From the NCBI GenBank assembly GCA_002104905.1, contig MCFE01000374.1:20824-84823 (forward strand): a stretch of 64,000 nucleotides of DNA, read 5' to 3'. Both the position numbers and the translations under genes were made by a program. This stretch comes from Basidiobolus meristosporus CBS 931.73. Lineage: Eukaryota; Fungi; Basidiobolomycota. Shown piece by piece: positions 2,404 to 61,500 of this stretch (its first letter is position 1; each line of letters begins with the position of its first letter). The notes below the pieces were generated by a model. The model had not been told where the DNA came from, did not search any database, and saw only the letters and a program-made list of their open reading frames with translations.

Positions 2404-4118
2404 ATGCTTTCATTTCCACATGCTACTTCTTCAATACGAAGGAGACATTCAATAGTGTTTCTGTGTGCTTTGAGCGTAATCATAAGTTATGCAGGTTTGG
2501 ACAGCAACTAATTAACTTCAGGAGAGGACATTCTGTTAACTGGTAAATACTTCATTCCAGATCGCTCCAACATTTCCATCGCTATCATACCTATGTCAGA
2601 AGAGTATTCATGGTCGTCTACAACACAGGGCCTCATACTGTCGGCCTTCTTTTACGGTTATATCTGTACTCAAGTTCTGGGAGGTTTTTTAGCGGATAAA
2701 TTCGGAGGAAAGAGTGTCCTAGCTTTAGGTATGTAAAATTTTCAAGTTTTAGTGCTGGGAACACATACTCAATGGAAAACCATATAAAGGTGCCTTTTTA
2801 TGGTCCCTTTTCACGCTGGCTACACCTTGGGTAGCTCACCACGTGTTCCTTCTATTTGCCTGTCGAATGCTGCTCGGTGCTGGAGAAGGTTTGTTAAGCA
2901 TCATAGCCTCTTCTCAAAGCACATTCTAAATAGGATTCCTCTTGTTTCAAAGGTCTCGGGTTTCCAGCAATCCACTCTTTAATAGCACAATGGATTCCGC
3001 ATCATGAGAGCTCTCGCGCAGTAGCTACCGTCACTGCTGCATCGTATGCTGGGGCAATTCTAGCACTCCTGATATCTGCGCCTATTGCGGCTTCGTCTCT
3101 TGGCTGGAAATGGATTTTCTACATTTTCGCAATTATGGGTTTCGGATGGAACATCCCGTGGTACATATTTGGCGCTAGCACCCCAGATCAATGCTCCGAA
3201 CTCTCATCATTGAGATCCATGTACGATGGCAAGAAAGATAACCAGATCCCATCGTACACGCCCCTAGGGGGTGACCTGGAGTCAGTGACCGAGGGAGGAG
3301 AGGAGTACCATAGAGACTTGGACAGCTCTAAGGCTGTGGGTGAAGAAGAGGTTCTAGTGCAGAACAACCAGCAGCGATTGGATAACAGGATTCCCTGGTG
3401 TAAGATCTTGCGAGCAAAAGAAGTCTGGGCTATATTGATCAACCAGTTTTGTAATTCCTGGGGATTTTACGTGCTTTTGAGTTGGTTGCCTACGTATTAC
3501 AAGGACGTATTCAATGTAGACTTGAATGAATTGGGCTATTTCTCAGGTACGTAGTTGGCTCAAGCTCTATCAGATTTCGTTTCTCACTATTGTCCTCAGT
3601 TTTGCCGTATATTGTACAAGGATTAGTTGGTCTAGCCAGTGGGTTTATTGGTGATTATGCAATTTATAGATTGGGGATACCTGTGGTTACTGTCCGTCGG
3701 GTTGCCCAGTGTGTCGGGATGCTGGGCCCAGGGGTGTTTCTCCTATTAGCGGGCTATACTGCCACTTCAGTTACCATCGGCATGGTTTATATATCCCTCG
3801 CATTAGGTTTCAACTCGCTCACTTTAATTGGTGTTTCCATTTCGCAGTTGGATATTGCTCCTAGGTTTGCTGGAATCATCTTTGGGATTGGGAACACTGC
3901 TGCTACACTTCCTGGTGGGTTACTGAGTAGTAAATTTCATTGCTTAGCTATTTCCCTGACAAACCATCATCAGGTATTCTAGGGTAACAGTGACTGGGCT
4001 TTTACTAGAGTCCAAAGAAGCGTGGCCGCTTGTTTTTGGATTGGCCGCAAGCTTCTATTTTGTTGGGGCCTGGACATGGCTTTTCTGGGGTGGAGGAAGT
4101 CAAATTGTTATACCATAG
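2404..4118 (+). CDS. MFS transporter, SLC17/anion:cation symporter (sialin/PHT4-like), about 5 introns
   Basis: Spliced translation MLSFP...ISYA|DRSNISIAIIPMSEEYSWSSTTQGLILSAFFYGYICTQVLGGFLADKFGGK; later WAILINQFCNSWGFYVLLSWLPTY and LDIAPRFAGIIFGIGNT; TAG at 4116-4118. Confidence 0.9.
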
Positions 4119-9405: not shown

Positions 9406-12400
9406 CTACTCCTCACCTACCGAGAAGTTGGCCTTCTTGTGTAATCTACCCCCGCCACCAGCCTCCCCTACGTGGATGCCACTCTGCGCGCTAAGCTGCA
9501 ACTCGCCATTGATCTCCTCGACCCGCTTTTTCAACTTCTCGATCTCGCTGAGTTTCTTCTCGAGCTCCGCCACTTCATTGTCAACGGACATCCGCTCTTC
9601 CTTGGTTCCGATTCTGGAGAACTCCCAGCGGCCGTGGTCTCCTATCAATCGAAGCAGATACTTGTGATACTTGAACAACGTGGGTCGATGCGAGATGGTA
9701 ATCAGTGCTATGAGGGTGCAGACATCAGTTAGCAGGGCCGTTGGCTTGACTTGTTCTACTGAACCTACTTATTCCCATCTCCTTGGCATGGCTGTACATC
9801 AGGCCCTCGACGTCGGAGCTGACCGCACTGGTACATTCGTCCAAAATCGCGAACTTGGGATGGTGGTAGAACAGTCGGGCCATGTTCATCTACAAAACTC
9901 ATTTAGCTCACTCCTTCGATGGGGAGGTTGAGGTGGACTTACTCGCTGTTTCTCTCCGCCAGAGAATACATCCTTCCACTCCTTCACGGTCTCCCAGCCA
10001 CCTTCTCTTTCAGGGATATAGGCGAGGTGAACCGCTTTGAGGATCTCGAAGAGCTCCTGATCGGTACGGCCATCTTGCAGCATCTGTGCGTAGGTGTGTG
10101 GGTAGATCACTCTGGAATTTCCCCAAGTTAGTCATCAGGTTCATGTGGAGAATGGGTCTCGACGTTGACATACTGTTCGCGTAGAGTGCCCAAGGATAAA
10201 TAGGGTCTTTGAGGTATATAGAACATGTCGACGGGCTCCGGTTCTTCAAGAGTCCCACCTATACACGACATGTTGGTTGGTGAGTTTAGACCAATCTCGA
10301 TGTCCTACTGGAGGCTACTTACGGAACACTGGCCATAATCCACTGATCACTCGAGCGACAGATGTCTTGCCTACGCCGTTGGGACCGGTGATCAACAGAT
10401 GGTCGCCCTTGTTGATGTCCATGTTTAGGTTCTGCACAAGTAGCTCACCTCCTTTGACATTTGTAGGGTTGGGGGTGACGATGGGAACGTCCTTGAACTG
10501 GATCCCGTTGATCCCGTACTCCACGTGCCCGCGGATGTCGGTGAGGGAGTAGATCTCGTCGATTTTCTCTTGCAGCAATGCCTCGTCCACAGCGGAGGTA
10601 TACTCGTTGTTGTTCAATGAGTGCAGGACCGAGAGAAGATTGTACACTCGAGAGGTGAAGCCAGCCAACTCGGCCAGTTCCTTGTACGAGTACATGATAC
10701 GGCCACCGGCGTCTGCCAAAGAGATCATCAGCCTGGCCCATGGAGTTAGATGGAAGTGTGAAACATAGTCCTAGCATGCTACGTACCTCTTGTTGGTGAT
10801 GAAATCTTGGGTACGGGCCCCGGAGCGATCTTTCGAAGCATTCGAGCCTCCGGTCAGCTCCTGGCGTCCCCCTTTCCCACCCCATTGAGGAAAGAAGACC
10901 GGAATGGAGCAGACGCCCAACCCGATGGCGCTCCAGCAATACTTGATCACGAAGTCCTCAAACATGTTGTAGCCGATGCGGAGTTTGTATACCCGGTTCA
11001 CATGCCGAATTAGGTGCTGGTATGCTCGATTCAAGATCGATTTCTCAAGGTTGGCGCCATGATAAAACGCGATCTCCTCAGCATTCGTGATCAACCGGGT
11101 GTGAGCGGAGCGGAAGTCGCCCTAGACATTGAAACGCAGGTAAGTATATTTGTATCCTGGGGGTGAAGGGTCAACGATTATCTGGATGACCTCTAGTTTG
11201 GCCTCCTCAGCTGCCATTTTGCCAAATGCTGGGGAGATGGCTCGCAAGATGGAGGCGCTTAGGATGTAGTTGAAGAAGAGCCCAATCATCCCGGAGGCAC
11301 CAAGGCTACTTGCGAGTTGGTAGTTGAAGATGAACAAGTCTAACAAGGGCTTTCCGATGTTGGAGTACAGAGACGACAGGGAATCGCAGAATCTGGCGAT
11401 ATCGGTGGTGATGTATCTAAAGTGCACGTTAGACCGATGCCATGGGTCAAGCAATACTACCGCTGCTCTTACTGGTCAGGACCATCCACACGCCCATCAA
11501 GGTTGAGAAGCTTGTAATAGGTTTTCTTTGGGCTGAGGTAGAGATCATGCACATATCGTGTCAAACGAGTTCGGAATGCAATGGCCAGTTTGGACTGGAG
11601 ATAACGGATCTATTCAAGAGCAATGTTACCCATCGTATGCTTAGGCCTAGCCGACGGCTCTCAACTTACCATGCTATTCGTGTAAGTCGCTGGCACGGCA
11701 ATGGCAAACCAATAGCCGATTCCCTTGAGGAATTGCCGCCCATTTCCATGCACCTATTCCAAACAACATGTGAGCTCAAAGTCCATCCAAGGCTATCGCA
11801 ACCATCTCCACTCACCAGATCCTTCACGATTTTCCCGTCCAGCTTCGCAACCACGACACTCAACCAGGTTCTCAAGATCAAAAAGGCGGTGTGGAGCATC
11901 AGGATGAACACCTCTTTCGACCGCATGGACGGTATGATGATCATAAAAATCGCCTTCATCTGTCGGAAAAATTCATTATCCACGGCCACCTTGGTCCCAG
12001 GCTTGATGGCTTGGAAGTGTTCCCTGTGTTGCTCATACACCAAGTTCGACACCTTGTTCCCCATAGGGTGGTTCTTCTCTATGACAAGCCCTGAAGAAGC
12101 TCCGTTGGAGGTGGAGATGGTGGTTTTTTTGGCTTTCGAGTAACGGTACATGCGGTTTATCACTAGACCGCTTAAGGAAACCAGGAAGAGCAAGGTTCGC
12201 ACGTTAGCGCCCTGGCCCAATCGATCACGGCGCACGTTTACAGTCATGGCTGCCAATCAATCAGCGTATATGCTGGCAAGAAGAGTCTGGTTTGTAGAAG
12301 TAAGGTTAGTTTCTATCCAAGTTGGCAAGCTCCTGAATAGTGGTTTGGCAAGAATATCGAGGGCTTTCAACTGCACTGGGGCAACAAGGGAGAGAGGTGA

Positions 12401-12705: not shown

Positions 12706-12905
12706 TCACATGCTTGCCATCAGTGGTGCAGTGGTGCAGTGGTGCATTAGTATCCTGTGGTTTTCACGAGGTTTGATCAATCGATTGATTGATTGATTAG
12801 TGGGATCTTCACATGTCACTACTTCTCACTAAAGATCATGTTACGCGTAACATCATGTGAAAGTCAGCCATGACATCAGCTGGTAAGATGCATAATGTTC
12901 ACATG
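12706..12905. promoter_or_regulatory. Cluster of four TCACATG/CATGTGA E-box motifs plus (CAGTGGTG)x3 and (GATT)n upstream of PXA1
   Basis: TCACATG at 12706, 12809, 12899; CATGTGA at 12854; tandem 8-mer at 12721-12744. Function is inferred. Confidence 0.45.
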
Positions 12906-13108: not shown

Positions 13109-14807
13109 CTACTCCATCTTGGACATCATCTCGAAGATCTCGACGTTCCGCAAATGTCGGGCCATAAACCTCATGAATTCAACGGTGTTGTTTTCGGGAC
13201 TCATATGCTTGTCCAGAAAGATGACCGCCAGAGTAATCTGAGCGTCAGCTCGGATTAGGTAATAGGTGCTGCCGACCTTTTTGTCGTAAAAGTGAACGTA
13301 TGTGGTCCGAATACTTGACAGGGAGATATCGTTTGTTTGCATGATTGAGATCAAATTCGGCCAGTGTTCGTAGGGGGGATTCTTTGGTACACAAAGGTTA
13401 CAAAGCTGAATAACTCTAATCAAAACAAATGATAGTGTTACCTCTGGATAGCTATAAATGCATGGGAAAGACATCAGTCCAGACGGTGCCTCATATTTCC
13501 CGGTTAAGAAAACATGGCCCTTCTTGTGAAATGGCTTATCCGGAGTTACCTCGTATATCAGTGATATACTATGGGCGCCTGAGCGTTTCCGAAAATTTCG
13601 GATTCTGGAGAGTGTAGAATGGTGAGGGGGATGTAAAATCTGAGCGAGTAACAAACAGACTTACAACGTAGAGTAGTCAGGCTCAACCCGTTTCCAGAGC
13701 GTCTTCAGTTCTCCCCCAATCGATCGCTCTTTTTCCAATAAGGTCTCCTGAAAATAGAGGGTCATTTTCGACATCAGACCATTGATGAATTGCGTGGTCC
13801 AACTCAAATTGTTGGGTAGTATCGGGGTATTTCGAAATGGACGGGTGTTTCTCTAAGAACAAAAGGTTATTTGGAGATACATGAACTGATCGGGCCATGA
13901 ACCCCTACATCTTGAGCCTCTGAAAGTGAGCACGCCTTTTTCCACTCAAAAAGCTCGTTTTTGGCAAGGTACAAGTTTACAGTCGACTTCTTGAAGTTGT
14001 ATTCTCCTAGGGCAATCTGCGTACTGAATATATGATATAGTACATCAAGTTCTTTCCTAGTGTTGATGCCAAATTGAGTATGGTTCAAATCTCTTCAAGA
14101 TTCATATCGTAGCTGATAATATCTTACTTGAGCACATATGATAGTAGCCCAAGGCTCTCTCCTAAAGGCATTTGCTGCAGTCTAGTTTGTATGTTGGAGA
14201 TTTTGTCGCGAACTGCCTCATATTTCGTTCCTACAGACTCTCCGGATAAACTGCGATAGCTGGGAATAAGAATAACTTAGCACGATATCCGCCACCAAAA
14301 GATACAGCCAACGAGGCATACATGTTGATCTGCTCCTGACGTATGATGGCCAAGTCATTCAAGGCTCTGCAGAGCTGGTTCAAAAATGCAGAGGCAGCAG
14401 ATTCCACGGGCGTAGGACTTCCACCTGAAAATAATACTTTCGCTTCTTTTATGGCGTCGTTACCAATGGTAGCGTACAAAATATTCAAAAACTAAAACAA
14501 CAGTGTCTTCGAGTTAGGGATTTTTCGAAACGATAGGAACTTGTTGAAAGATTACGTTTTCTCTCCGAAAGAATTTAGGCTTTAAGAAAGCAAGGCTAGT
14601 ATATAGTGCTTCACAAGTTGCCAGCCGTGTTAGTATAGTTCCTACAGAGGGCGATAGCTAACAATTCGGCAAACCAAATAAATTATCGACTCAGGTATCG
14701 AGAGGCTCAGGTATACATACCTTGTGAAGTTTTGAAGAAAACCGGTTAGCCTTGAAGTATTCGAAACCACCGAGAGCGTTCAGGTAGTCTTTACATGCGG
14801 CTTCCAT
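13109..14807 (-). CDS. KICS2: KICSTOR subunit 2 (C12orf66/DUF2003)-like protein, spliced
   Basis: N-terminus MEAACKDYLNALGGFEYFKA...LATCEALYTSLAFL..KFFRREN; C-terminus HWPNLISIMQ...YVHFYDKKVGSTYYLIRADAQITLAVIF. Both match my recollection of human C12orf66 (HLGIFSYDKA; LAAAEKVYHSL; HWPNVIMIM...[27 protein letters not shown]). Confidence 0.85.
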
Positions 14808-15092
14808 AGCATACAATCACAAATCAAGATATGCTGGAAATTTTGAGTACTTGTCACTGTGAATTTTTTCCGGTATACCCGAAATCTTGTATTTAAATTT
14901 CCACCCTTAGAAGAAGGCCGATGATTACCGAAAATCGGCCCAGCCGAAAATGAAGTCGATTCAAGTTTGGCTTTGTTGTTTGTTTATACTTGAATAGACT
15001 AAAGGGACAGGGTTGGGTAGGACCGGTGTTTGCTCCTCTCCTTTAAATCAATTCACACTTAGTTTGTCTCATATACCTTTTTTCCTACTGAG

Positions 15093-15789
15093 ATGGAAGA
15101 ACCACGTGCGCTTATCAAGCAAACCATTGATACTTTCCAACCTTCGGGGGACCTAGACGTTATTCGGTACGTCAACAAATTACTTACCCAAACTGAAGAG
15201 CTAAGGCAAAAACATGCGAACGAGTGCAAAGACATCAACAAAAGTAAGTAAACCGTGTAAGAAACTGCACACACGAGCAACCTACTAACACGAACTGTTT
15301 TAGCACTTGAGAACGAGCTTGAGCTGGCCAAATCAAGCACCACTAGTTACAAATCCCTTGCTAATGACTTGAAGGGAGAAAACGTCCATAATCTTGAGCG
15401 TGAAAAACTCTTCTTATCAAAGCAGCTCCAGGATTCTGAAACCAAACTTGGCTCCTTGAAGACCGAGCTCGAGCAACTGGAATCCGAATTGGCTGAACTA
15501 ACCAGCCTTCCTGTTGAGGATGAGCTAGCTCCTGACCAGACAATGTAATCCCGCGATTTCTACTCAAGTGTGCTTGACCATTTCTAACCTCATGCCTTTT
15601 TTAATTCCCTGCAGTTTGAAACTCCAAATCTACCGCTCTTTGGGTGTTGATGTTATCCCAGACGAACTCGGGAATCTGAACAAGATTCGGGTTCGCTCGA
15701 CCGAAAAGAATGATATTCATACATTGTCGTTGGATGAGAATAGCTCCAAATACTCCCAAGTCAACCATTTGTGGGATCTATGCTCTTGA
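15093..15789 (+). CDS. SPC24: Kinetochore Ndc80-complex subunit Spc24, 2 introns
   Basis: MEEPRALIKQTIDTF, a coiled coil, then LKLQIYRSLGVDV...DIHTLSLD...NHLWDLCS (Spc24 RWD tail). Confidence 0.85.
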
Positions 15790-17852: not shown

Positions 17853-20495
17853 TTAGATTCGTGGCTTTCTTTCAACGTCTGTACGGGCCTCATGAGAAGG
17901 CTGTAGGTTATACGCCTCAGAGCTCCACTTGGTAGGTTCAGATTTAGTATGTTGAGCAGGAAGCGGTTCAATTTTGGATTCAGTCTTTCTTCTTTCGGCT
18001 TCCTGAAGCGCTTGTTCAGTAGCAAGTGCTATCTTGTTATCAAGGTCAAGCAGCATCTCTGTCAGCTTCTTTGGGACCATCTGTTGGATGACTTTTTTCA
18101 CCTTCGAGTTGATGAATGGCGCGAGGAGTTTGTAGGTGGTGCTGTGTCTGGTCCCATGGATCTTCAGCTTCAGGTCATGCACCCGAGTATTGCAGTCTAA
18201 CACCTCATACAGATGCGCCTTCTTCCCTTTCTCTGGGCTCACATTGAGCAGCAGATCCAGCTCAATCCCCTCCTCTGGCATGTCCACATCCATGTACCCA
18301 ACATCGGTCATCTTGGGGAATGTCTTCTTGCGGTAGTAGAATGCCGCATCCCTCACCTTCACCTGGACATTGCTCAGCTTGATGTACACCTTGTTGCGGA
18401 GGTTCTGCTCTGCCTTGAGGTTGGTGTCCACCACCGTCTGGGTGTTGATGTGCACAAACTTGGGAAGGATGTTGCTGCACTGGATCACCACATTGTCCAA
18501 CACCACGTCCAGCTTCTCGTCCGACTGCTCAACTCGTGGCAGTGGGACGTAGTCCATCTTCTCAGCGATGATCGGAATCAACCTGGCAAAGTCCTTGACC
18601 AGGTCGTACTTGAATGTGGGCTTGCCAAATTCATCCATGAACAAGTCCTTTGTGAACGCCTCCAGATCCTGAACAAACCGCTTGCTCGTCTTGTCTTGCT
18701 TCAGAGCAGCATTGAAGTTGCTCAACTCATCGCTGATCTGTGCAACTAGCCCGCGATATCTGTTCTCCACGATGGAGTGGCCACGCTCCACAATTCGGTT
18801 GGCGTCATCGGTGTACCCCGGACGATCAACATAGTCGTACTCGCGGATAGAGCGGTGGACGAATGTCTTGATGTCGCGTAGGAGCTCCGCCAAGTCATGA
18901 TCTTGATTGGCTTTGTTAAGAAGCACCCTGACAGAGTCGAACAACGGGTCCAGCGACTTCTGCCCAGCAAAGTTCTCCACAAGCTCTTTCGCATTTGCTC
19001 TAGCAATCGACAGATCATCCTGAGCAACTTCGTGCTTGGCTGCGGTGGTCTCCTTGGCGGAGCTGGTCACATGACGGCCATGGTCCTTCAGCCCAGATAA
19101 GACTGAGAGAAGCTCGTCGACAGCCATCTGGAAGTCAGGATTGCCTTGGACCTCTCTGAAGATGGCCTTGACCCGCTGGATCAGGTGGGTGCGTTGATCT
19201 GGAGTCAGTCGCATGTCGGTGACCTTTTGCTGCAGCCCTGTTTGCACCTCCTTGGCTACCCCAACTGCAGCATCCAGCGGGGAGATCTCGCCTTGTTCAG
19301 CCTTGTGGACATACGGGAGAGCCGTCTCTTTGGCGTTGAAGTATACCGGGGCCATGGAGTCTTTCATAGTGTTCCTCAGTTGGTCCCTCGCCTCACCAGG
19401 CATCATCTCACGGTCCTCACCATGATGAACACTGTTCGGAACTCCTTGTGCTTGAGTGAGGTCGTGTGGGTGTGCATACGATTCAGCTCCATGTGGCCCT
19501 GTGGATGAGCCAATGACTGGCTGTTCCAGTTCGCCTCTGCCATAAGCACCCTCGGTCTGTGCGGTTTGTGCGAAGGGCACGCCATCAACGTCACTACCAA
19601 TTCCACTCTGATTGGTGCGGTGATGGTAGCCAGGCTGATCACTGGCAAGTGTATCTGGTGCGGAGGTTGGTGCGCCTGCAATCCCTTCTGACGGTTGAGC
19701 CATATGGTTGGCGAATCGTCCTCCCTCTGAATCTCCGTTGCGAGTGAAGCTGTCGCCAGTGTGGTTATTGATGTCGATGCCATTGTTGGCGCTAGCGTAG
19801 TTGTTAGGAGCTCCTACTGGGACCCTGGTCTGTTGGGCAGTTTGCATATCCGGATAGGTTGACTCACCAGTGTGTGGATCTACTGTTGTCTCTCCATTCT
19901 GTGCTGGATGTCCGGGAACATTGGAGGTGACTGTCTCTTGCAGGATGTTCGTCACGTCATTGATCAGTCGGCGGAACTGTGAGGAAGTGACCAGTAGCCA
20001 GGCTACCTTCGAGATGCTCTCCACCCCATCCGAAGCCAAATCCTTCGCCTCGCCAACTGTCCCGGAAAGCTCGCCCTTGGCCCCGGCGAGTTCATCCCCA
20101 TCCTTCATGGTGTTACCAGCCTTGCCGCTGTGGTAGATGATGTTCTGTAGCTGATCATTGTCATTCTTCTCGGCGAGTAGGATTTGGGCCGACTCAACAA
20201 GACGCTCCGCGTTGGCCATCATTCTCTTTCCCTCAGGGCTCATATCCGAGGCTATGTCATGGAAGTTGTTGTTCTCGGTTAGCTTCTCCAGGCCCTGGTT
20301 GATCTGATTGGTGGTTGGCAGTCTGCCTTCCTGGAGCGCCTTACCCACCTCCTGGAGATGTTCTTTTCTGCGAATGACCTTCTCCTGTTGGGTGCCCTGT
20401 TTCGGTGGCAAGCTCTCACCAGGAACCCCGATCTTTGTAGAGTCATTGATATGAGTTGAATGATCAGTGTTTGTGTTGGAGTTAGAAGGGCTCAT
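17853..20495 (-). CDS. HAM1-like (DUF5923/DUF4449, BPI/TULIP-like C-terminus) protein, copy A, intronless
   Basis: GRLPTTNQI..GL; IPLPRVE.SD..LD.VLDN; FYYRKKTFPKMTD.G..DV motifs of the fungal HAM1-like family. First ATG is 20495 (MSPSNSN). Confidence 0.8.
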   Translation of the reverse strand: MSPSNSNTNTDHSTHINDSTKIGVPGESLPPKQGTQQEKVIRRKEHLQEVGKALQEGRLPTTNQINQGLEKLTENNNFHDIASDMSPEGKRMMANAERLVESAQILLAEKNDNDQLQNIIYHSGKAGNTMKDGDELAGAKGELSGTVGEAKDLASDGVESISKVAWLLVTSSQFRRLINDVTNILQETVTSNVPGHPAQNGETTVDPHTGESTYPDMQTAQQTRVPVGAPNNYASANNGIDINNHTGDSFTRNGDSEGGRFANHMAQPSEGIAGAPTSAPDTLASDQPGYHHRTNQSGIGSDVDGVPFAQTAQTEGAYGRGELEQPVIGSSTGPHGAESYAHPHDLTQAQGVPNSVHHGEDREMMPGEARDQLRNTMKDSMAPVYFNAKETALPYVHKAEQGEISPLDAAVGVAKEVQTGLQQKVTDMRLTPDQRTHLIQRVKAIFREVQGNPDFQMAVDELLSVLSGLKDHGRHVTSSAKETTAAKHEVAQDDLSIARANAKELVENFAGQKSLDPLFDSVRVLLNKANQDHDLAELLRDIKTFVHRSIREYDYVDRPGYTDDANRIVERGHSIVENRYRGLVAQISDELSNFNAALKQDKTSKRFVQDLEAFTKDLFMDEFGKPTFKYDLVKDFARLIPIIAEKMDYVPLPRVEQSDEKLDVVLDNVVIQCSNILPKFVHINTQTVVDTNLKAEQNLRNKVYIKLSNVQVKVRDAAFYYRKKTFPKMTDVGYMDVDMPEEGIELDLLLNVSPEKGKKAHLYEVLDCNTRVHDLKLKIHGTRHSTTYKLLAPFINSKVKKVIQQMVPKKLTEMLLDLDNKIALATEQALQEAERRKTESKIEPLPAQHTKSEPTKWSSEAYNLQPSHEARTDVERKPRI

Positions 20496-23400
20496 ATTGA
20501 ACAGCACGATGAATTATCAGATTATTAACAAAGAATGTACAAAGTTGGAAAGTTTGAACTGTTCCCGAAGAACGCAACTTTTTTTATAAAGCGGAAGCCG
20601 GTATAGAGTGTGACAACAACCCGTTGAAAATAAATTGAAACGGTGACGTTGATGAGAGCATAGTGATTGATAGCATACCACTATTCTCGATCTAATAGAC
20701 CTTCATATCTCATTGCTATTGCCAGACGAACTTCAACCATAACAATCAATTGTAGTTGGTGATTTAATTCATCCCCATTTTTGGTATGGTCTGATGTTAG
20801 TATTACATAATACGCTAGACATTTATAATGAAATTGGCCATCATGACACCAAACTGAGTCGGAAATGGAGATACTTGCAACTTATTTTCATTAAGAGGTC
20901 CAACTATGGTTGGTTCAGTTTGACCAGAACTAACGACAAATCGGGGCGGAAATGGCAATGTTAATCACTGCTGAGCTAATTACTTTGGTGAAGGTTGAAA
21001 TCATCTTTTGCTCATCCACAAAGTCGACGTCATCTGGCCTGCTTTATGAATGAACCATGATAGAATCTATATAAACGCTGTGAGAAACTTGGGTTTCTCC
21101 AGAATCCGCTTTGTATATTCTTCGTTAATAATCTATTAATTCATAACATGAACCCTACTAACTCCAACACAAACACTGATCATTCAACTCATATCAATGA
21201 CTCTACAAAGATCGGGGTTCCTGGTGAGAGCTTGCCACCGAAACAGGGCACCCAACAGGAGAAGGTCATTCGCAGAAAAGAACATCTCCAGGAGGTGGGC
21301 AAGGCGCTCCAAGAAGGCAGACTGCCAACCACCAATCAGATCAACCAGGGCCTGGAGAAGCTAACTGAGAACAACAACTTCCATGACATAGCCTCGGATA
21401 TGAGCCCTGAGGGAAAGAGAATGATGGCCAACGCGGAGCGTCTTGTTGAGTCGGCCCAAATCCTACTCGCCGAGAAGAATGACAATGATCAGCTACAGAA
21501 CATCATCTACCACAGCGGCAAGGCTGGTAACACCATGAAGGATGGGGATGAGCTCGCCGGGGCCAAGGGTGAGCTTTCCGGGACAGTTGGCGAGGCGAAG
21601 GATTTGGCCTCGGATGGGGTGGAGAGCATCTCGAAGGTAGCCTGGCTACTGGTCACTTCCTCACAGTTCCGCCGACTGATCAATGACGTGACGAACATCC
21701 TGCAAGAGACAGTCACCTCCAATGTTCCCGGACATCCAGCACAGAATGGAGAGACAACAGTAGATCCACGCACTGGTGAGTCAACCTATCCGGATATGCA
21801 AACTGCCCAACAGACCAGGGTCCCAGTAGGAGCTCCTAACAACTACGCTAGCGCCAACAATGGCATCGACATCAATAACCACACTGGCGACAGCTTCACT
21901 CGCAACGGAGATTTAGAGGGAGGACGATTCGCCAATCATATGGCTCAACCGTCAGAAGGGATTGCGGGTGCAGCAACCTCCGCACCAGATACACTTGCCA
22001 GTGATCAGCCTGGCTACCATCACCGCACCAATCAGAGTGGAATTGGTAGTGACGTTGATGGCGTGCCCTTCGCACAAACCGCACAGACCGAGGGTGCTTA
22101 TGGCAGAGGCGAACTGGAACAGCCAGTCATTGGCTCATCCACAGGGCCACATGGAGCTGAATCGTACGCACACCCACACGACCTCACTCAAGCACAAGGA
22201 GTTCCGAACAGTGTTCATCATGGTGAGGACCGTGAGATGATGCCTGGTGAGGCGAGGGACCAACTGAGGAACACTATGAAAGACTCCATGGCCCCGGTAT
22301 ACTTCAACGCCAAAGAGACGGCTCTCCCGTATGTCCACAAGGCTGAACAAGGCGAGATCTCCCCGCTGGATGCTGCAGTTGGGGTAGCCAAGGAGGTGCA
22401 AACAGGGCTGCAGCAAAAGGTCACCGACATGCGACTGACTCCAGATCAACGCACCCACCTGATCCAGCGGGTCAAGGCCATCTTCAGAGAGGTCCAAGGC
22501 AATCCTGACTTCCAGATGGCTGTCGACGAGCTTCTCTCAGTCTTATCTGGGCTGAAGGACCATGGCCGTCATGTGACCAGCTCCGCCAAGGAGACCACCG
22601 CAGCCAAGCACGAAGTTGCTCAGGATGATCTGTCGATTGCCAGAGCAAATGCGAAAGAGCTTGTGGAGAACTTTGCTGGGCAGAAGTCGCTGGACCCGTT
22701 GTTCGACTCTGTCAGGGTGCTTCTTAACAAAGCCAATCAAGATCATGACTTGGCGGAGCTCCTACGCGACATCAAGACATTCGTCCACCGCTCTATCCGC
22801 GAGTACGACTATGTTGATCGTCCGGGGTACACCGATGACGCCAACCGAATTGTGGAGCGTGGCCACTCCATCGTGGAGAACAGATATCGCGGGCTAGTTG
22901 CACAGATCAGCGATGAGTTGAGCAACTTCAATGCTGCTCTGAAGCAAGACAAGACGAGCAAGCGGTTTGTTCAGGATCTGGAGGCGTTCACAAAGGACTT
23001 GTTCATGGATGAATTTGGCAAGCCCACATTCAAGTACGACCTGGTCAAGGACTTTGCCAGGTTGATTCCGATCATCGCTGAGAAGATGGACTACGTCCCA
23101 CTGCCACGAGTTGAGCAGTCGGACGAGAAGCTGGACGTGGTGTTGGACAATGTGGTGATCCAGTGCAGCAACATCCTTCCCAAGTTTGTGCACATCAACA
23201 CGCAGACGGTGGTGGACACCAACCTCAAGGCAGAGCAGAACCTCCGCAACAAGGTGTACATCAAGCTGAGCAATGTCCAGGTGAAGGTGAGGGATGCGGC
23301 ATTCTACTACCGCAAGAAGACATTCCCCAAGATGACCGATGTTGGGTACATGGATGTGGACATGCCAGAGGAGGGGATTGAGCTGGATCTGCTGCTCAAT

Positions 23401-23572
23401 GTGAGCCCAGAGAAAGGGAAGAAGGCGCATCTGTATGAGGTGTTAGACTGCAATACTCGGGTGCATGACCTGAAGCTGAAGATCCATGGGACCAGACACA
23501 GCACCACCTACAAACTCCTCGCGCCATTCATCAACTCGAAGGTGAAGAAAGTCATCCAACAGATGGTCCCAA
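18071..23572. repeat. Large inverted repeat: arms ~18071-20485 and ~21158-23572 (~2.4 kb, ~99% identical), spacer ~670 bp
   Basis: Direct comparison of the reverse complement; about 16 substitutions counted by eye. Confidence 0.97.
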
Positions 23573-23778
23573 TGAAGTTATCCGAAATGTTGGTTGATCT
23601 TGATGATAAAATTGCCTCGCAAACCGAAATCACGCTTGCAAAAGCATCCTTGAGAAAAGCCGAGATAGAGGAGGAGAAAAGAAGTTTAGATATGTCACAA
23701 GCCACGGCGACACCTGAAAAATGGGCTTCGGAGGCCTATGATCCTCGTTCGACTAGTAAAGACACGCCTGTGCAGTAA
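21148..23778 (+). CDS. HAM1-like protein, copy B, intronless
   Basis: 876-aa ORF, 3 aa different from copy A over the ~810-aa core; C-terminal ~65 aa diverged but alignable. Confidence 0.8.
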   Translation: MNPTNSNTNTDHSTHINDSTKIGVPGESLPPKQGTQQEKVIRRKEHLQEVGKALQEGRLPTTNQINQGLEKLTENNNFHDIASDMSPEGKRMMANAERLVESAQILLAEKNDNDQLQNIIYHSGKAGNTMKDGDELAGAKGELSGTVGEAKDLASDGVESISKVAWLLVTSSQFRRLINDVTNILQETVTSNVPGHPAQNGETTVDPRTGESTYPDMQTAQQTRVPVGAPNNYASANNGIDINNHTGDSFTRNGDLEGGRFANHMAQPSEGIAGAATSAPDTLASDQPGYHHRTNQSGIGSDVDGVPFAQTAQTEGAYGRGELEQPVIGSSTGPHGAESYAHPHDLTQAQGVPNSVHHGEDREMMPGEARDQLRNTMKDSMAPVYFNAKETALPYVHKAEQGEISPLDAAVGVAKEVQTGLQQKVTDMRLTPDQRTHLIQRVKAIFREVQGNPDFQMAVDELLSVLSGLKDHGRHVTSSAKETTAAKHEVAQDDLSIARANAKELVENFAGQKSLDPLFDSVRVLLNKANQDHDLAELLRDIKTFVHRSIREYDYVDRPGYTDDANRIVERGHSIVENRYRGLVAQISDELSNFNAALKQDKTSKRFVQDLEAFTKDLFMDEFGKPTFKYDLVKDFARLIPIIAEKMDYVPLPRVEQSDEKLDVVLDNVVIQCSNILPKFVHINTQTVVDTNLKAEQNLRNKVYIKLSNVQVKVRDAAFYYRKKTFPKMTDVGYMDVDMPEEGIELDLLLNVSPEKGKKAHLYEVLDCNTRVHDLKLKIHGTRHSTTYKLLAPFINSKVKKVIQQMVPMKLSEMLVDLDDKIASQTEITLAKASLRKAEIEEEKRSLDMSQATATPEKWASEAYDPRSTSKDTPVQ

Positions 23779-33839: not shown

Positions 33840-34724
33840 ATGACTTACTCATCTGAATGGTCTCTTCTCATCAATCCCATCACTACCACTGGATTTCCTT
33901 TTGACACACTGGAGGAGATCTATTCCAAGTACTGTGGACCATCAACCCCAATCTACTCAAGGAGATCCCTTGTTAAGCTTCTCTGCTATTACAAGAACTA
34001 ATGCCCTACAAGGTTTCATCCCACCATCCATGGCAACAAAAGTCCTAGAAGCTTTCATTCCCAGCTGACAGCAATGGAGAACCACCTTGCAGAGGGTATG
34101 AATGACTTAGAGCAAGCTTGGAATACTAGGTTCAGAAGCTCCAATAGACTTCCATATCCCAGAGTGTTCAGCAACAGGTTCTATATCAGGAGTATTTTGG
34201 ATACCTTCCCAGTGAGGATTAACAGACCTTCTAGAGGGCAGAGGCACTTTTATTCTGGCAAGTACAAGGCACACTGTGTGAAGTTTCAAGCACTGTCTGA
34301 CATTGAGGGTAACATCATCTGGTTTAGTGGGCCATTTGCTGGAAGTAGGCATGACAAAGCACTCTGGGTAGAGAATCATCCTGAATTCAGTAGAGGGGAG
34401 AAATGTATGGCAGACTTGGCCTATATAGGAGAGGATTGTCAGAGATTAGGATGTATTACAGCTTATAGGAAGCCAAGGAATGGTGTGCTTAGCAGGAAGC
34501 AGAAGCTCTACAATGAGATATTTAATCATTTCAGAGTAAGGGTAGAGCACACATTTGGATATCTGAAGAGATTCAGCATATTGGCAGGTAAATACAGAGG
34601 AAAGTCATATATAGGAGAAAACAGCAGAATAGGTAAAATAGTTAAGATACTTATCAATGCACAGTATGTTCATACAAGAAGACATCCACTGAGAGAAATG
34701 TGTCTGGAGCATTATGAAGAGTAA
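33840..34724 (+). pseudogene. IS5/ISL2/PIF-Harbinger-like DDE_Tnp_4 transposase with one in-frame stop (~33998)
   Basis: LDTFPVRINRP...FYSGKYKAHCVKFQ, GSRHD, ADLAYIG, RVRVEHTFGYLKRF (D-D-E). Upstream ATG 33840 is in frame across a single TAA (YYKN*). Confidence 0.88.
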
Positions 34725-55599: not shown

Positions 55600-58500
55600 C
55601 TATAAAAAATCTTAAACTTGGAATTCATCCAATTTTTAGCTGATATTCTGCTGGTATATGTTGCAATTTAAGAAGTGATTTGGATATAAGGAACTTATCA
55701 AGAAATAGTGATAATAGTTGAACTGTTATTTATTCATAAAGAAGCTCAGTATTTATACCTTTGTAGAAGTAATACAGCTGTAACACTAAGTAAGGAGGGT
55801 TTCTCAGTATTCAGGAGCATTCTGTAAGAGTTTCAAGGTTAGTACATAATGTTTGGTAATAGTGTTAATTTGATCCTGACTTTAGGGGAATAATCATAAG
55901 ATCATATATCTGGAGAAAGTGGCAAAGTTAAGACAGTAAATGAGTCCTACAGTGACTAAGACTAGTCTAGAATTGTTAAGTAAATTTTTAGCTGCTGAAT
56001 GATACCCAATAGTCCAATATTTCAACACTCCCCCTCTACTAAATAATTTCTTAATCCCAATTTCTCTCTAAGGATCTCAAACTGTGGCCTAGCTAGTGGT
56101 TTTATCAATATGTCTGCCACCATTTTGTCAGTTGGGCAGTAAACTAACTCTACTAAGTTATTTTCTACAGCTTCCCTCACAAAGTGATGCTGTATATCAA
56201 TGTGCTTAGTTCTGGCATGATTGATAGGATTTCTAGCTAATGATATACAACTTTGATTATCCTTGTAATACATGTTGGTTCATCTGAGTTAAAACCTAAG
56301 TCTTTGAATAATTTTTGTAGCCATACAGCCTCCTTAGTTGCTTGACATGCAGCCATACATTTGTCTTCAGTTGTAGATAGTGCCACAGTTGGTTGTTTCT
56401 TGCAATTCCAAGTAATAGCTGCACCAGCATAGAGAAATATATAGCCTGTGGTAGAGCGTCTGTCAATCAGATCCCTACCCCAATCTGAATCACTATAACC
56501 ATCAAATTTTTGCCTATTAGCTGCTCCAGAGTATTCCAGTACCATATTTATGGTACCTTGTAGATATCTGAAAATTTGCTTAACTGCTGCAACTTGATCT
56601 GATCCATAATTCTGCATGAATTGACTGACTATTCCAACTGCCACTGCAATATGTGGACATCCATACACCATCAAGTACATTAGGCTACCAACCATTGATT
56701 GATAGGGATGTTATGATCTGCCCCTTGAATGTTTGAGTTAGATCAGTTTTTAGTCAAATCAATTAGTATATGTTTAGGTTATCAGTATATCAGTATTATC
56801 TATGAAATCAGTAGCATTAGTCAGCAAATGAATCAGCAGACCCTTATCGGACAGAAATAGATATATTAAGTAGGATCTTATTGGGTGATGATGATGCAAT
56901 CAAATGAGTCATCAGCCACAACCTACATTAGGAAATATAATTAGTCAGCAATTGATCTGGTAAAATGTATATAAGGAGCTGCTGGAACCTCAATAAAAAT
57001 CAGTTCAAGTTTTAGTGAATACAATACTAGCTAAACTCCCTATTCCTCTACAACTCTTATACCAAGACTTGTAACATTGGTAGCAGCAATAACCAGAAAC
57101 CTCCCTCCTGAAGAAAGAAGAAACCACCCTCAAGATGTTGGACAATCAAGAATGGAAGAATGCCATGCAGCAAGTCCTGGCCCAACTGCAACAGTTACTC
57201 CGGATCCTCAGCCAACAGCAACAAAGAATGACTACCATGGCTCAGAGCCAGCAAAGCCCTGTCAAGAGCAACTTTAGTGTGAAGGTCAACCGGTACCATG
57301 GCAGAGTCAATGAAAACCTGGGAACTTGGCTGTTTCAGATTGAAGAAGCTTTTCAAGCTAAAGGAATTGCTCCAGAGAGCAAGTTGCATTATGCAGCTTC
57401 TTACCTGGCAGATGCAGCTTTACAGTGGTACCACAACAAGCCCAGGTTGGCCACTATGATGGGATGCGCTACAATCTCTACCTGGGATGAGTTTGTGTCG
57501 GAAATTCAGGATGCTTTTGAACCTCCACACCAGCAGACACTACTAAGAAGGAAGTTAAAGACACTCAGACAGAAAGGAATGGTGCAAGAATACATCTATG
57601 AGTACAGATGTCTACTTGGACAAATTGAAAGAATGGACCCCTTGGATCAAGTTGAATACTTTATTGATGGGTTGAAAGAAAGAACTTGCAAGGAAGTGAA
57701 ATACCAAAGACCTCAGACTATTGAAGAAGCCATCAAGATTGCCATTGACTATGACCCAGCTATGTTTGGAGTTGGGAAGCCTACAGTGACTAATCAGAAA
57801 GGCTATAATCATTATGAAAGAAGACAATCAGAAGCAGTACCAATGGAAATAGACGCTATGCAGAAGAATCCCTCCTCAGAAGAATGCAAGAAGAGAGGAC
57901 TTTGCTTCAATTGCCATCAGCAGGGACATATTGCAAAGTACTGCCCTCAGAGAAGAAGTGGACACCAGCCAATAAGAACCTTCAACCATATTGAGTCCCA
58001 TGAACACAGTAATGTGGAAGATGAGCTTGAAGAAGACTTGGAACTCACCTTCCATATGACAGAAGAGTACTTGTCCCAAATGACTTCAAACTCAGGGAAG
58101 TTATTGTACTTGAATGGAGTAATCAATGGAGTACCTGCCAAGATCATGATTGACTCAGGAGCATTGCATGAGTACATGTCAGAGCAATTTGCTTTGAAAG
58201 CTGGAATCAACTCGGAACCTACCAAATCAACTTCAGTCTCCACAGCTGATGGGAACTCCCACATAATCAACCGTATTACCCAGCCAGTAAGAATGAAGAT
58301 CAATGACTATGAAGAAGACCTACAGGCTTATATATTTGGGAACTGCAAGTTTGACCTTGTACTTGGAAAAACCTGGCTATTTTGTTGTAATCCATCAATG
58401 AACTGGAGAACCCATGCTACTCAGATCCAAAAAGACAACAAGACCTATGAGCTATTACCTGCCAGGCTGGATTTCAACTTGGTCAGTCCCAGTGTGTGTG

Positions 58501-61500
58501 AGACAAGTGAACTTAGCAAGACCCAGTTCTGTAGTGCACTTAGAAAAGGTACCAAGATGTTCCTCATGGCGGTATTGCAGGAGGATTCCTCTACCCCAGC
58601 ACCCCAGCAGGTCCAGACTCTCTTGAAGAAATATTCAGATGTGTTTCCAGATGAGCTTGTAAGCCAACCACCAGTCAGAGACGTGGATCATGCCATTGAC
58701 ACAGGAGATAGCCCTCCAGTGAGCAAGACACCTTACAGAATGAGTCCATTGGAATTGGAGGAAATGAAGAGACAAATTGATCAGCTATTGGAGCAAGGAT
58801 ACATCAGGCCCAGCAAGTCACCCTGTGGAGCACCAGTGCTTTTTGTGAAAAAGAAGGAAGGGACACTTAGGATGTGCATTGACTACAGAGCCCTGAACTC
58901 AGTTACTGTCAAGAATAAGTACCCCATACCATGGATTGATGAGCTTTTGGACCAACTTAATGGAGCCACTATTTTCAGCAAGATTGACCTCATGTCAGGA
59001 TAAAACCATATTAGGGTGAAACCAGAAGATATTCCTAAGACAGCATTTGGGACCAGATATGGACATTACGAGTACTTAGTCATGAGTTTTGGTCTCACCA
59101 ATGCCCCTGCAACTTTCATGACCCTGATGCAGACTGTCTTCCAGGAGTACTTTGACAAGTTTGTCATAATCTACCTAGATGATATACTGATATACAGCAA
59201 GACAGAAGAGGATCACTTGGTGCACATTGAAAAGGTCTTGAAGAAGCTAAGAGAGAACAAGCTTTATGGCAAGCTATTCAAGTGTGAATTCTTTAAGGAA
59301 CACGTAAAATATCTGGGACACATAGTGACTAGCACAGGAGTAACCTTAGACCCCAAAAAGGTGGAAGTAATCAAGAATTTGAAGCAGCCCCATATCATAT
59401 CAGAACTCAGATCCTTCCTTGGAATGGTTTCCTATTATTGGAGATTTGTCAAGTCATTTGCAAGTATTGCAGCCTCTTTAACTGATATCCTCAAGAAAGA
59501 CAATACCTACAAGTGGGACATAGCTTGTGAGACTGCCTTCCAGACGCTCAAGAATGAACTTGCTAAGCTGCCAAGCTTAAGAATACCAGACTTCAGAAAA
59601 GAGTTCACTCTATGCACAGATGCTTCTGATTATGCAATTGGTGGAGTGCTGAGCCAAGAACACAAGGGAAAGGACTACCCTGTTGCCTTTGAATCCAAGA
59701 AACTGAACTCAGCAGAACAAAACTATCCAGTCCATGAGAAGGAGATGCCTGCTATAATACACTGTTTGAAGACATGGAGATGCTATATCAAAGGAGTCAA
59801 ATGCACTGTGAAGACCAATCATGCCTCCCTCAAGTATATATTTACTCAGAAGGTACTCTCTCAAAGAATGACAAGATGGAGTGAATACATTCAGCAATTT
59901 GACCTGGAGATTGTCTACTGCCCTGGAAAAACCAACATGGCTGCTGATGCCTTATCAAGATTAGATCAAGTTGCACAACTCAACTTGGTGCATGAATCAG
60001 ATTGGCCTAGCCTATTACCAAAGTACTTGGAGGACCAAGCCATTCCTAATGAGGTGGATGAAGATATCAAGAAGATAATCCATGATGAAGCCAGCAAATT
60101 TGTTGTACAGGATGAAACACTCTACCAAATTGTTGATGGAAGCCCTATTGCCTATTGTCCTTATGTTGCTTGCCTGGATTTAATACATAAGCTACACAAT
60201 GGATATGGACATCTTGGGATTGAAGGAACCTATAGCCTTGTGAAAGCCAGAGCATGGTGGCCCAGAATGAAACAAGACATTGACAAGCTAGTAAAAACAT
60301 GCCCAAACTGCCAAATCAATCAAGGCCAGCCACAAAGAATTGCCAAACTCTTCCCTTTGGAGCCTGTAAGACCATTTGAGAGATGGGGAATTGACTTTAT
60401 TGGAAGACTGCCAACTACTAGGAAATGCAACCGATGGATCCTAGTAGCAATTGACCATGCCACTAAATGGCCAGTTGCTAAAGCTGTACCAGTAGCCAGT
60501 GAACAAGAAGTTGCAAGTTTCTTTTACCATGAGATCCTGATGAAGTTTGGATGCCCTGTGGAGATCTTATCTAGTAGAGGTGCAAACTTTATGGCAAAGA
60601 CATTAGAGGCTTACCTGGAAATGCAGCAGATCAGACACTTGAAAACCTTGGCATATCACCCCAGAACTAATGGAATCACTGAGCGGTTTAATGGATTATT
60701 TGGAAAAATGCTGACCAAGTATGCAAATGGAGTTGTCAGTGGATGGGATGAGTATATAGACCAAGCACTCTTTGCATGCAGAGTCAGAGTACACAACACC
60801 ACCCAGCAATCACCATTTTACTTGGTTTATGGATGTGAACCAAGGATTCCAGGAGATCTCACACAACCAAAACTTACAGACACCCTAGAAGATGAACTCA
60901 GTCAGCCAGGTAGACACCAGCAACTGGAACAAAGACGTCAAGAGGCACAGACCAAAGTATTTCAAAGTGCAGAAAAGATGAAGCAGAGATTTGATAAGAC
61001 TATAACACCAGAAGCATTGACAGTTGGGAACTTTGTATTGCTAAGAAACAACACTCGGAAGAAGTTTGAGCCACAATGGACAGGACCATTCAAGATCATC
61101 AGAGAATGTCCATTTGCAACTTACCAACTGGTGGACAAACCAGGCAATATCCGGGAAAACTTAGTGCATAGGGACAGACTCAAGGTTGCAAGACTTGCAG
61201 ATAATACTGAACCATCAAGATATTGGTATCACAAGAAAAGAGATTCAGGAGAACCCTCTCAACTTTAGTAGGGGAGAATGTTATGATTTGCTGCTTGAAT
61301 GTTTAATTTAGATCAGTTTTTAGTCAAATCAATAAGTATATATTTAGGTTATCAGTATATCAGTATTATCTATGAAATCAGTAGCATTAGTCAGCAAATG
61401 AATCAGCAGACCCTTATCAGACAGAAATAGATATATTAAGTAGGATCTTATTGGATGATGATGATGCAATCAAATGAGTCATCAGCCACAACCTACATTA

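Follow-up and report, generated by a model that had tools for sequence, protein, structure and literature searches.

The window, a stretch of 64,000 nucleotides from the genome of Basidiobolus meristosporus CBS 931.73, carries on its minus strand, at 13109-14807, a gene of the KICS2 family, here called copy A (ORX90566.1 / K493DRAFT_339926). The coding region is intact, with the start ATG at 14807 and the stop at 13111-13109. A reading of the sequence combined with spliced contigs gives a model of eight exons and 1263 nt, i.e. 420 codons plus the stop; all seven introns are of the GT..AG type and measure 56-71 nt. Divergent from KICS2 lies a gene for Spc24 of the Ndc80 kinetochore complex (15093-15789, plus strand; PF08286, E 6e-15), with two introns, 15244-15303 and 15545-15614, whose removal is seen in spliced contigs. 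The start codons of the two genes are separated by 285 bp (14808-15092), presumed to be a bidirectional promoter. Downstream of the KICS2 stop, at 12733-12800, there are three tandem copies of CAGTGGTG, followed by a run of GATT units.

Other parts of the window hold further genes and mobile elements. Two HAM1-like open reading frames are found in inverted orientation, at 17853-20507 (minus strand, 884 aa) and 21148-23778 (plus strand, 876 aa), and both match HAM1-like N-terminal domains with E about 5e-103. Mobile sequences are represented by a DDE_Tnp_4 (Harbinger-type) transposase frame at 34074-34724 (plus strand) and a Ty3/gypsy-type retroelement at 57135-61268 (plus strand), which consists of two adjacent open reading frames with gag, protease, reverse transcriptase, RNase H and integrase domains. 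A DEAD-box helicase gene and an ankyrin-repeat gene are also present further along. None of these is TORC1-related.

The exons of copy A, all read on the minus strand, can be followed one by one. Exon 1 (14721-14807) begins with the ATG at 14807 and encodes residues 1-29, and exon 2 (14556-14657) encodes residues 30-63; the joint 14657/14721 in a spliced contig links the two, the joint 14491/14556 links exon 2 to the next, and the intron positions in the paralogue are equal. Exon 3 (14322-14491) starts with residue 64 and ends after the second base of codon 120. Its 3' boundary, with the donor GTATGC, is predicted only; an identical phase-2 intron is present there in the paralogue, and the model aligns across it without gaps to a Basidiobolus ranarum protein, P0001. 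Exon 4 (14128-14259) follows from the model and the paralogue, with an X3 joint at 14055/14127 (cut +1). From exon 5 onwards matches to the Pfam profile PF09404 run collinearly: exon 5 (13909-14056) has a weak match to profile positions 185-224, exon 6 (13665-13852), which holds residue D272, matches positions 250-293, exon 7 (13442-13604) matches 296-348, and exon 8 with the stop (13109-13381), which holds Y370, matches 352-434 with E 8e-20. Contig joints delimit exons 5 and 6, and the joint 13604/13665 in an X3 contig marks the start of exon 7. Intron 7 (13382-13441) is in frame and 60 nt long; an X3 contig skips it and the Pfam positions are continuous across the join.

The contigs come from a public run, X3, labelled 'DNA?'. 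They are treated here as a transcript assembly because they are clearly spliced, though no listed run is recorded as RNA. They span only about 13360-14236 and 14332-14772, and both transcript ends and the 14260-14321 junction fall outside. Within these limits six of the seven introns are confirmed by contig joints (14720-14658, 14555-14492, 14127-14057, 13908-13853, 13664-13605 and 13441-13382), whose ends read CT..AC on the plus strand, which fits a gene on the minus strand. Copy A is expressed and correctly spliced. The seventh intron, 14321-14260, is probably real as well: its position and phase are shared by an intron of the paralogue ORY02227.1, it is used in the deposited gene model, and further support comes from the gapless alignment of the 420-residue model to P0001 (420/420). 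A single long intron, 14720-14492, was also considered, but the spliced contigs rule it out, as they show the 102-nt exon 14657-14556 inside it. At 14179 an X3 contig has C where the genome has A, which changes codon 147 from CTG to CGG (L147R). The site is 53 nt from the contig end, and the mismatch may be allelic, reflect a strain difference or come from an error of assembly.

The deposited protein, P0115 (ORX90566.1), is 428 aa long and identical to the 420-residue model in every exon save for two splice choices. It keeps the in-frame 60-nt intron 13441-13382, which adds 20 residues, and in exon 7 it uses a later acceptor (13568-13604 region), by which 12 residues are lost just after a conserved EPDY motif. 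At both places the transcript contigs favour the 420-residue version. The outside homologues agree. On a profile built from 25 non-Basidiobolus homologues, the 420-residue model scores 455.6 bits in one piece covering positions 2-440 of 442, whereas P0115 scores 392.2 bits in two pieces; removal of intron 13382-13441 and correction of the exon 7 acceptor raise the score from 392 to 456 bits. The deposited model ORX90566.1 is thus in need of two corrections, supported by transcripts and profile, and the product is a protein of 420 aa.

What is this protein? The last 164 residues (13112-13603, minus strand) match PF09404 (C12orf66_like, 'KICSTOR complex C12orf66 like') with 89.8 bits and E 2e-25, against a gathering threshold of 22 bits, and the deposited protein matches the same profile with 137.5 bits (E 6.6e-40). 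When the N-terminal exons were searched singly against Pfam no useful match was found, since the pieces are too short; whole-protein profiles do cover the N-terminus. With the C-terminal piece as query, 108 relatives were found among 1.84 billion representative proteins. The best is P0001 (KAK9695180.1, 420 aa), a hypothetical protein of B. ranarum that is 73% identical to the 420-residue model, and a second search with P0001 as query found P0115. This close relative took the place of the spliced copy A protein in the comparisons with the PDB and with known folds. At the sequence level residues 38-415 of P0001 align with human KICS2 (25gf_D plus four more entries; 9o5a_F) and mouse 2gnx_A, with E from 3e-39 to 1e-36, and nothing besides the KICS2 chains 25gf_D, 9o5a_F and 2gnx_A was found in the PDB at E up to 0.01.

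The fold points the same way. An AlphaFold model of P0001, made from a 28-sequence alignment, has pLDDT 89.3 and pTM 0.88 and is disordered only at residues 215-223. It is predicted to consist of an all-helical N-terminal domain (about 1-285) and an alpha/beta C-terminal domain (about 286-420). A Foldseek search with this model at E up to 0.001 gave six matches, all of them KICS2: five chains from cryo-EM structures of human KICSTOR or KICSTOR-GATOR1 and one from a mouse crystal (2gnx). Of these 9van_D superposes best (TM 0.83/0.88, rmsd 2.5 A); the five cryo-EM chains have a query-normalized TM score (TMq) of 0.79-0.83, and the mouse crystal structure, which is truncated, one of 0.55. Far weaker matches follow (E 0.03-0.4), to the roadblock-type domains of Rag GTPases, LAMTOR and MglB, and these suggest, in a loose way, that the modelled C-terminal domain of KICS2 may be roadblock-like. 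Taken together, membership of copy A in the KICS2 family is virtually certain. The initial annotation had proposed an intact fungal homologue of KICS2 (C12orf66) at 13109-14807, and that proposal is borne out: the frame is open from ATG to stop with canonical splice sites, the DUF2003/PF09404 match is far over the cut-off, both sequence and fold match human KICS2, and the exon structure agrees with spliced contigs at six of seven introns.

The human KICS2 disease alleles p.Asp296Glu and p.Tyr393Cys show weaker binding to SZT2 (PMC11866974). Alignments made via P0001 place D272 and Y370 of the copy A protein opposite human D296 and Y393. Both are conserved, and Y370 is nearly invariant among 28 homologues. 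The alignments show that the copy A residues equivalent to those tied to SZT2 binding in the human protein have been kept.

How does a KICS2 gene in Basidiobolus stand in relation to the published record? Until 2025, reviews called KICSTOR vertebrate- or mammal-specific; one from 2021 (PMC8534245) describes it as mammalian-specific and absent from yeasts and Drosophila. The statement in the initial annotation that KICSTOR had been described as lacking in yeasts is correct on the evidence of that review and of Wolfson 2017 as quoted in PMC11836306. The latter paper (Sci Rep 2025), on KICSTOR in non-Dikarya fungi, explicitly corrects Wolfson 2017 on the absence of KICSTOR. It reports homologues conserved across Mucoromycota, Entomophthoromycota and Neocallimastigomycota, with all four subunits present in the early-diverging fungal group, and several fungal phyla that hold only part of the subunit set. 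The idea of a retained KICSTOR arm of TORC1 control agrees with this report, and by analogy the complex may assemble in Basidiobolus also. The implied novelty did not survive: the 'duplications' sheet of PMC11836306 already gives ORX90566.1 together with ORY02227.1 as a KICS2 duplication in B. meristosporus CBS 931.73. The Basidiobolus KICS2 gene is a published one, and the present analysis is a confirmation, not a discovery.

The same source offers candidates for the partner subunits. Its homologue table, which gives no organism names, lists ORY06833.1 under ITFG2, ORX89644.1 under KPTN and ORX93034.1 under SZT2. Entries that are named as B. meristosporus in PMC11836306 run from ORX81913.1 to ORY06737.1, and the three partner accessions fall within this span or just past it. 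The span also includes at least one foreign accession, ORX82336.1 of Anaeromyces robustus. The candidate ITFG2, KPTN and SZT2 accessions, putatively of B. meristosporus by accession proximity, point to a full subunit set.

The roles of the KICSTOR subunits in the human system are described in PMC11836306 (Table 1) and PMC8534245. By analogy, and given its homology to human KICS2, the Basidiobolus protein most likely binds an SZT2 orthologue, and the two would combine with orthologues of KPTN and ITFG2 into a scaffold like KICSTOR. Through it GATOR1 (SEACIT: Iml1/Npr2/Npr3) would be anchored to the membrane of the vacuole or lysosome. There GATOR1 would act as a GAP for a RagA/Gtr1-type GTPase, by which TORC1 would be turned off when amino acids are scarce. 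The literature searched yielded no data on KICS2-SZT2 association or GATOR1 recruitment in fungi. Assembly of the complex, its location and its effect on TORC1 in Basidiobolus are projected here from the human system, and a mechanism of this kind appears reasonably likely.

Does KICS2 of Basidiobolus necessarily work within a complex? The main rival explanation is a stand-alone KICS2-like protein that functions outside any KICSTOR, in another process. It would fit with fungal phyla that keep only some of the subunits (PMC11836306), and with partner subunits in B. meristosporus that are candidate accessions only. It is nevertheless unlikely. The residues linked to SZT2 binding in human KICS2 are conserved, the whole fold is kept over the full length in the P0001 model, and KICSTOR is reported as conserved in Entomophthoromycota by PMC11836306, whose tables contain candidate accessions for all three partners.

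The paralogue of copy A, copy B (ORY02227.1, P0109), is on contig MCFE01000059.1 and its protein falls in the same 90% cluster as P0001; over the last 420 residues it shows 91% identity to P0001 and 72% to copy A. In its deposited model (10001-10840 of the copy B region) 133 extra residues with a weak C2 domain (E 2e-6) precede the KICS2 part, across an unusually long intron of 385 nt, and two gene models may have been fused here. In an exact spliced alignment copies A and B agree in the position and phase of all seven introns. Nonsynonymous divergence between the two (dN) is 0.16, with saturation at synonymous sites (LWL85 dS 1.5; NG86 not computable), which gives dN/dS of about 0.1 or less. 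With dS saturated, such a ratio means that selection has kept both copies over a long time, and both paralogues are under purifying selection.

The duplication is larger than the KICS2 gene itself, as MFS transporter genes are found downstream of both copies. They are in the same orientation, with about 70% nucleotide identity, at 2558-4116 in the window and at 18779-20367 in the copy B region. This partial collinearity suggests duplication of a segment or of the whole genome, or else a hybrid genome. A tree built from 18 sequences places fungal KICS2 in a single clade (100/100), to which the sequences of Nematostella (an animal) and Balamuthia (an amoebozoan) do not belong; this is consistent with vertical descent. 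Horizontal transfer of KICS2 is unlikely, given that the fungal sequences form a single clade. The three Basidiobolus sequences group together (99/100), and copy B pairs with the B. ranarum protein (99/96) with copy A outside that pair, so that the duplication, or a hybrid origin, predates the split between copy B and its B. ranarum counterpart.

Two further ideas bear on what the pair of genes does. The first is that the paralogues have divided the job and build distinct KICSTOR variants, e.g. for different nutrients or life stages. The 72% identity, the purifying selection on both and the partly collinear duplicated regions are noted beside this idea, which is speculative and rather improbable. 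If it were true, Basidiobolus, which is culturable, would offer a natural system for separating KICS2 functions. The second is that copy A is a redundant duplicate drifting to loss while copy B does the work. In B. ranarum one KICS2 copy is seen, in a fragmentary assembly, and an orthologue is known there for copy B only, at 91% identity; this, along with the one non-synonymous transcript difference, L147R, could be taken as a sign of decay in copy A. Such decay is very improbable, however, since the frame of copy A is intact with canonical splice sites at all seven introns, its transcripts show correct splicing, dN/dS stands at about 0.1 although dS is saturated, and copy A does as well as copy B on the profile of 25 non-Basidiobolus homologues (455.6 vs 456.6 bits). 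As to a chance chain of open reading frames or an annotation artefact, for which nothing speaks besides the N-terminal exons that alone lack a Pfam match, spliced transcripts and end-to-end homology refute it. Overall, copy A is probably best explained as one of two KICS2 paralogues with a KICSTOR-type role.

What is added here to the published record is a corrected, RNA-supported gene model; the fit of Basidiobolus KICS2, by way of the P0001 model, to the newly solved (2025-2026) human KICSTOR structures; the conservation of the two residues tied to SZT2 binding; and a description of the duplication, with its identical introns, its dN/dS of about 0.1 and an age greater than that of the split between copy B and B. 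ranarum. The presence of KICSTOR in early-diverging fungi places an inhibitory TORC1 arm in the ancestor that fungi and animals share, with later loss in Dikarya, a point already made by PMC11836306.

Comparison with known KICS2 proteins brings out both constancy and change. Human KICS2/C12orf66 (9van_D, 9v6e_D, 9o5a_F and 25gf_D; mouse 2gnx_A) and the Basidiobolus protein share PF09404, the two-domain fold and the equivalents of D296 and Y393, and collinear similarity covers nearly the whole protein (E 3e-39 with P0001, which is 73% identical to copy A). Identity between human KICS2 and P0001 in structural alignments is about 22-25%. The fungal protein is some 25 residues shorter than human KICS2 (420 vs 445 aa), mainly at the N-terminus, and P0001 differs also in its disordered loop, 215-223. 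The nearest known relatives, ORY02227.1 and KAK9695180.1, are 72-73% identical to copy A without gaps. Further away are the KICS2 homologues of Mucoromycota, Glomeromycota and Mortierellomycota, which are of the same family and length class with 32-48% identity, and of which one from Entomortierella parvispora (P0129) is annotated as 'KICSTOR complex protein C12orf66'. These phyla differ from that of B. meristosporus, Basidiobolomycota in current NCBI taxonomy, and many Mortierellomycota members are longer (510-670 aa). Yet all of them form one fungal clade with Basidiobolus, and they are catalogued together in PMC11836306.
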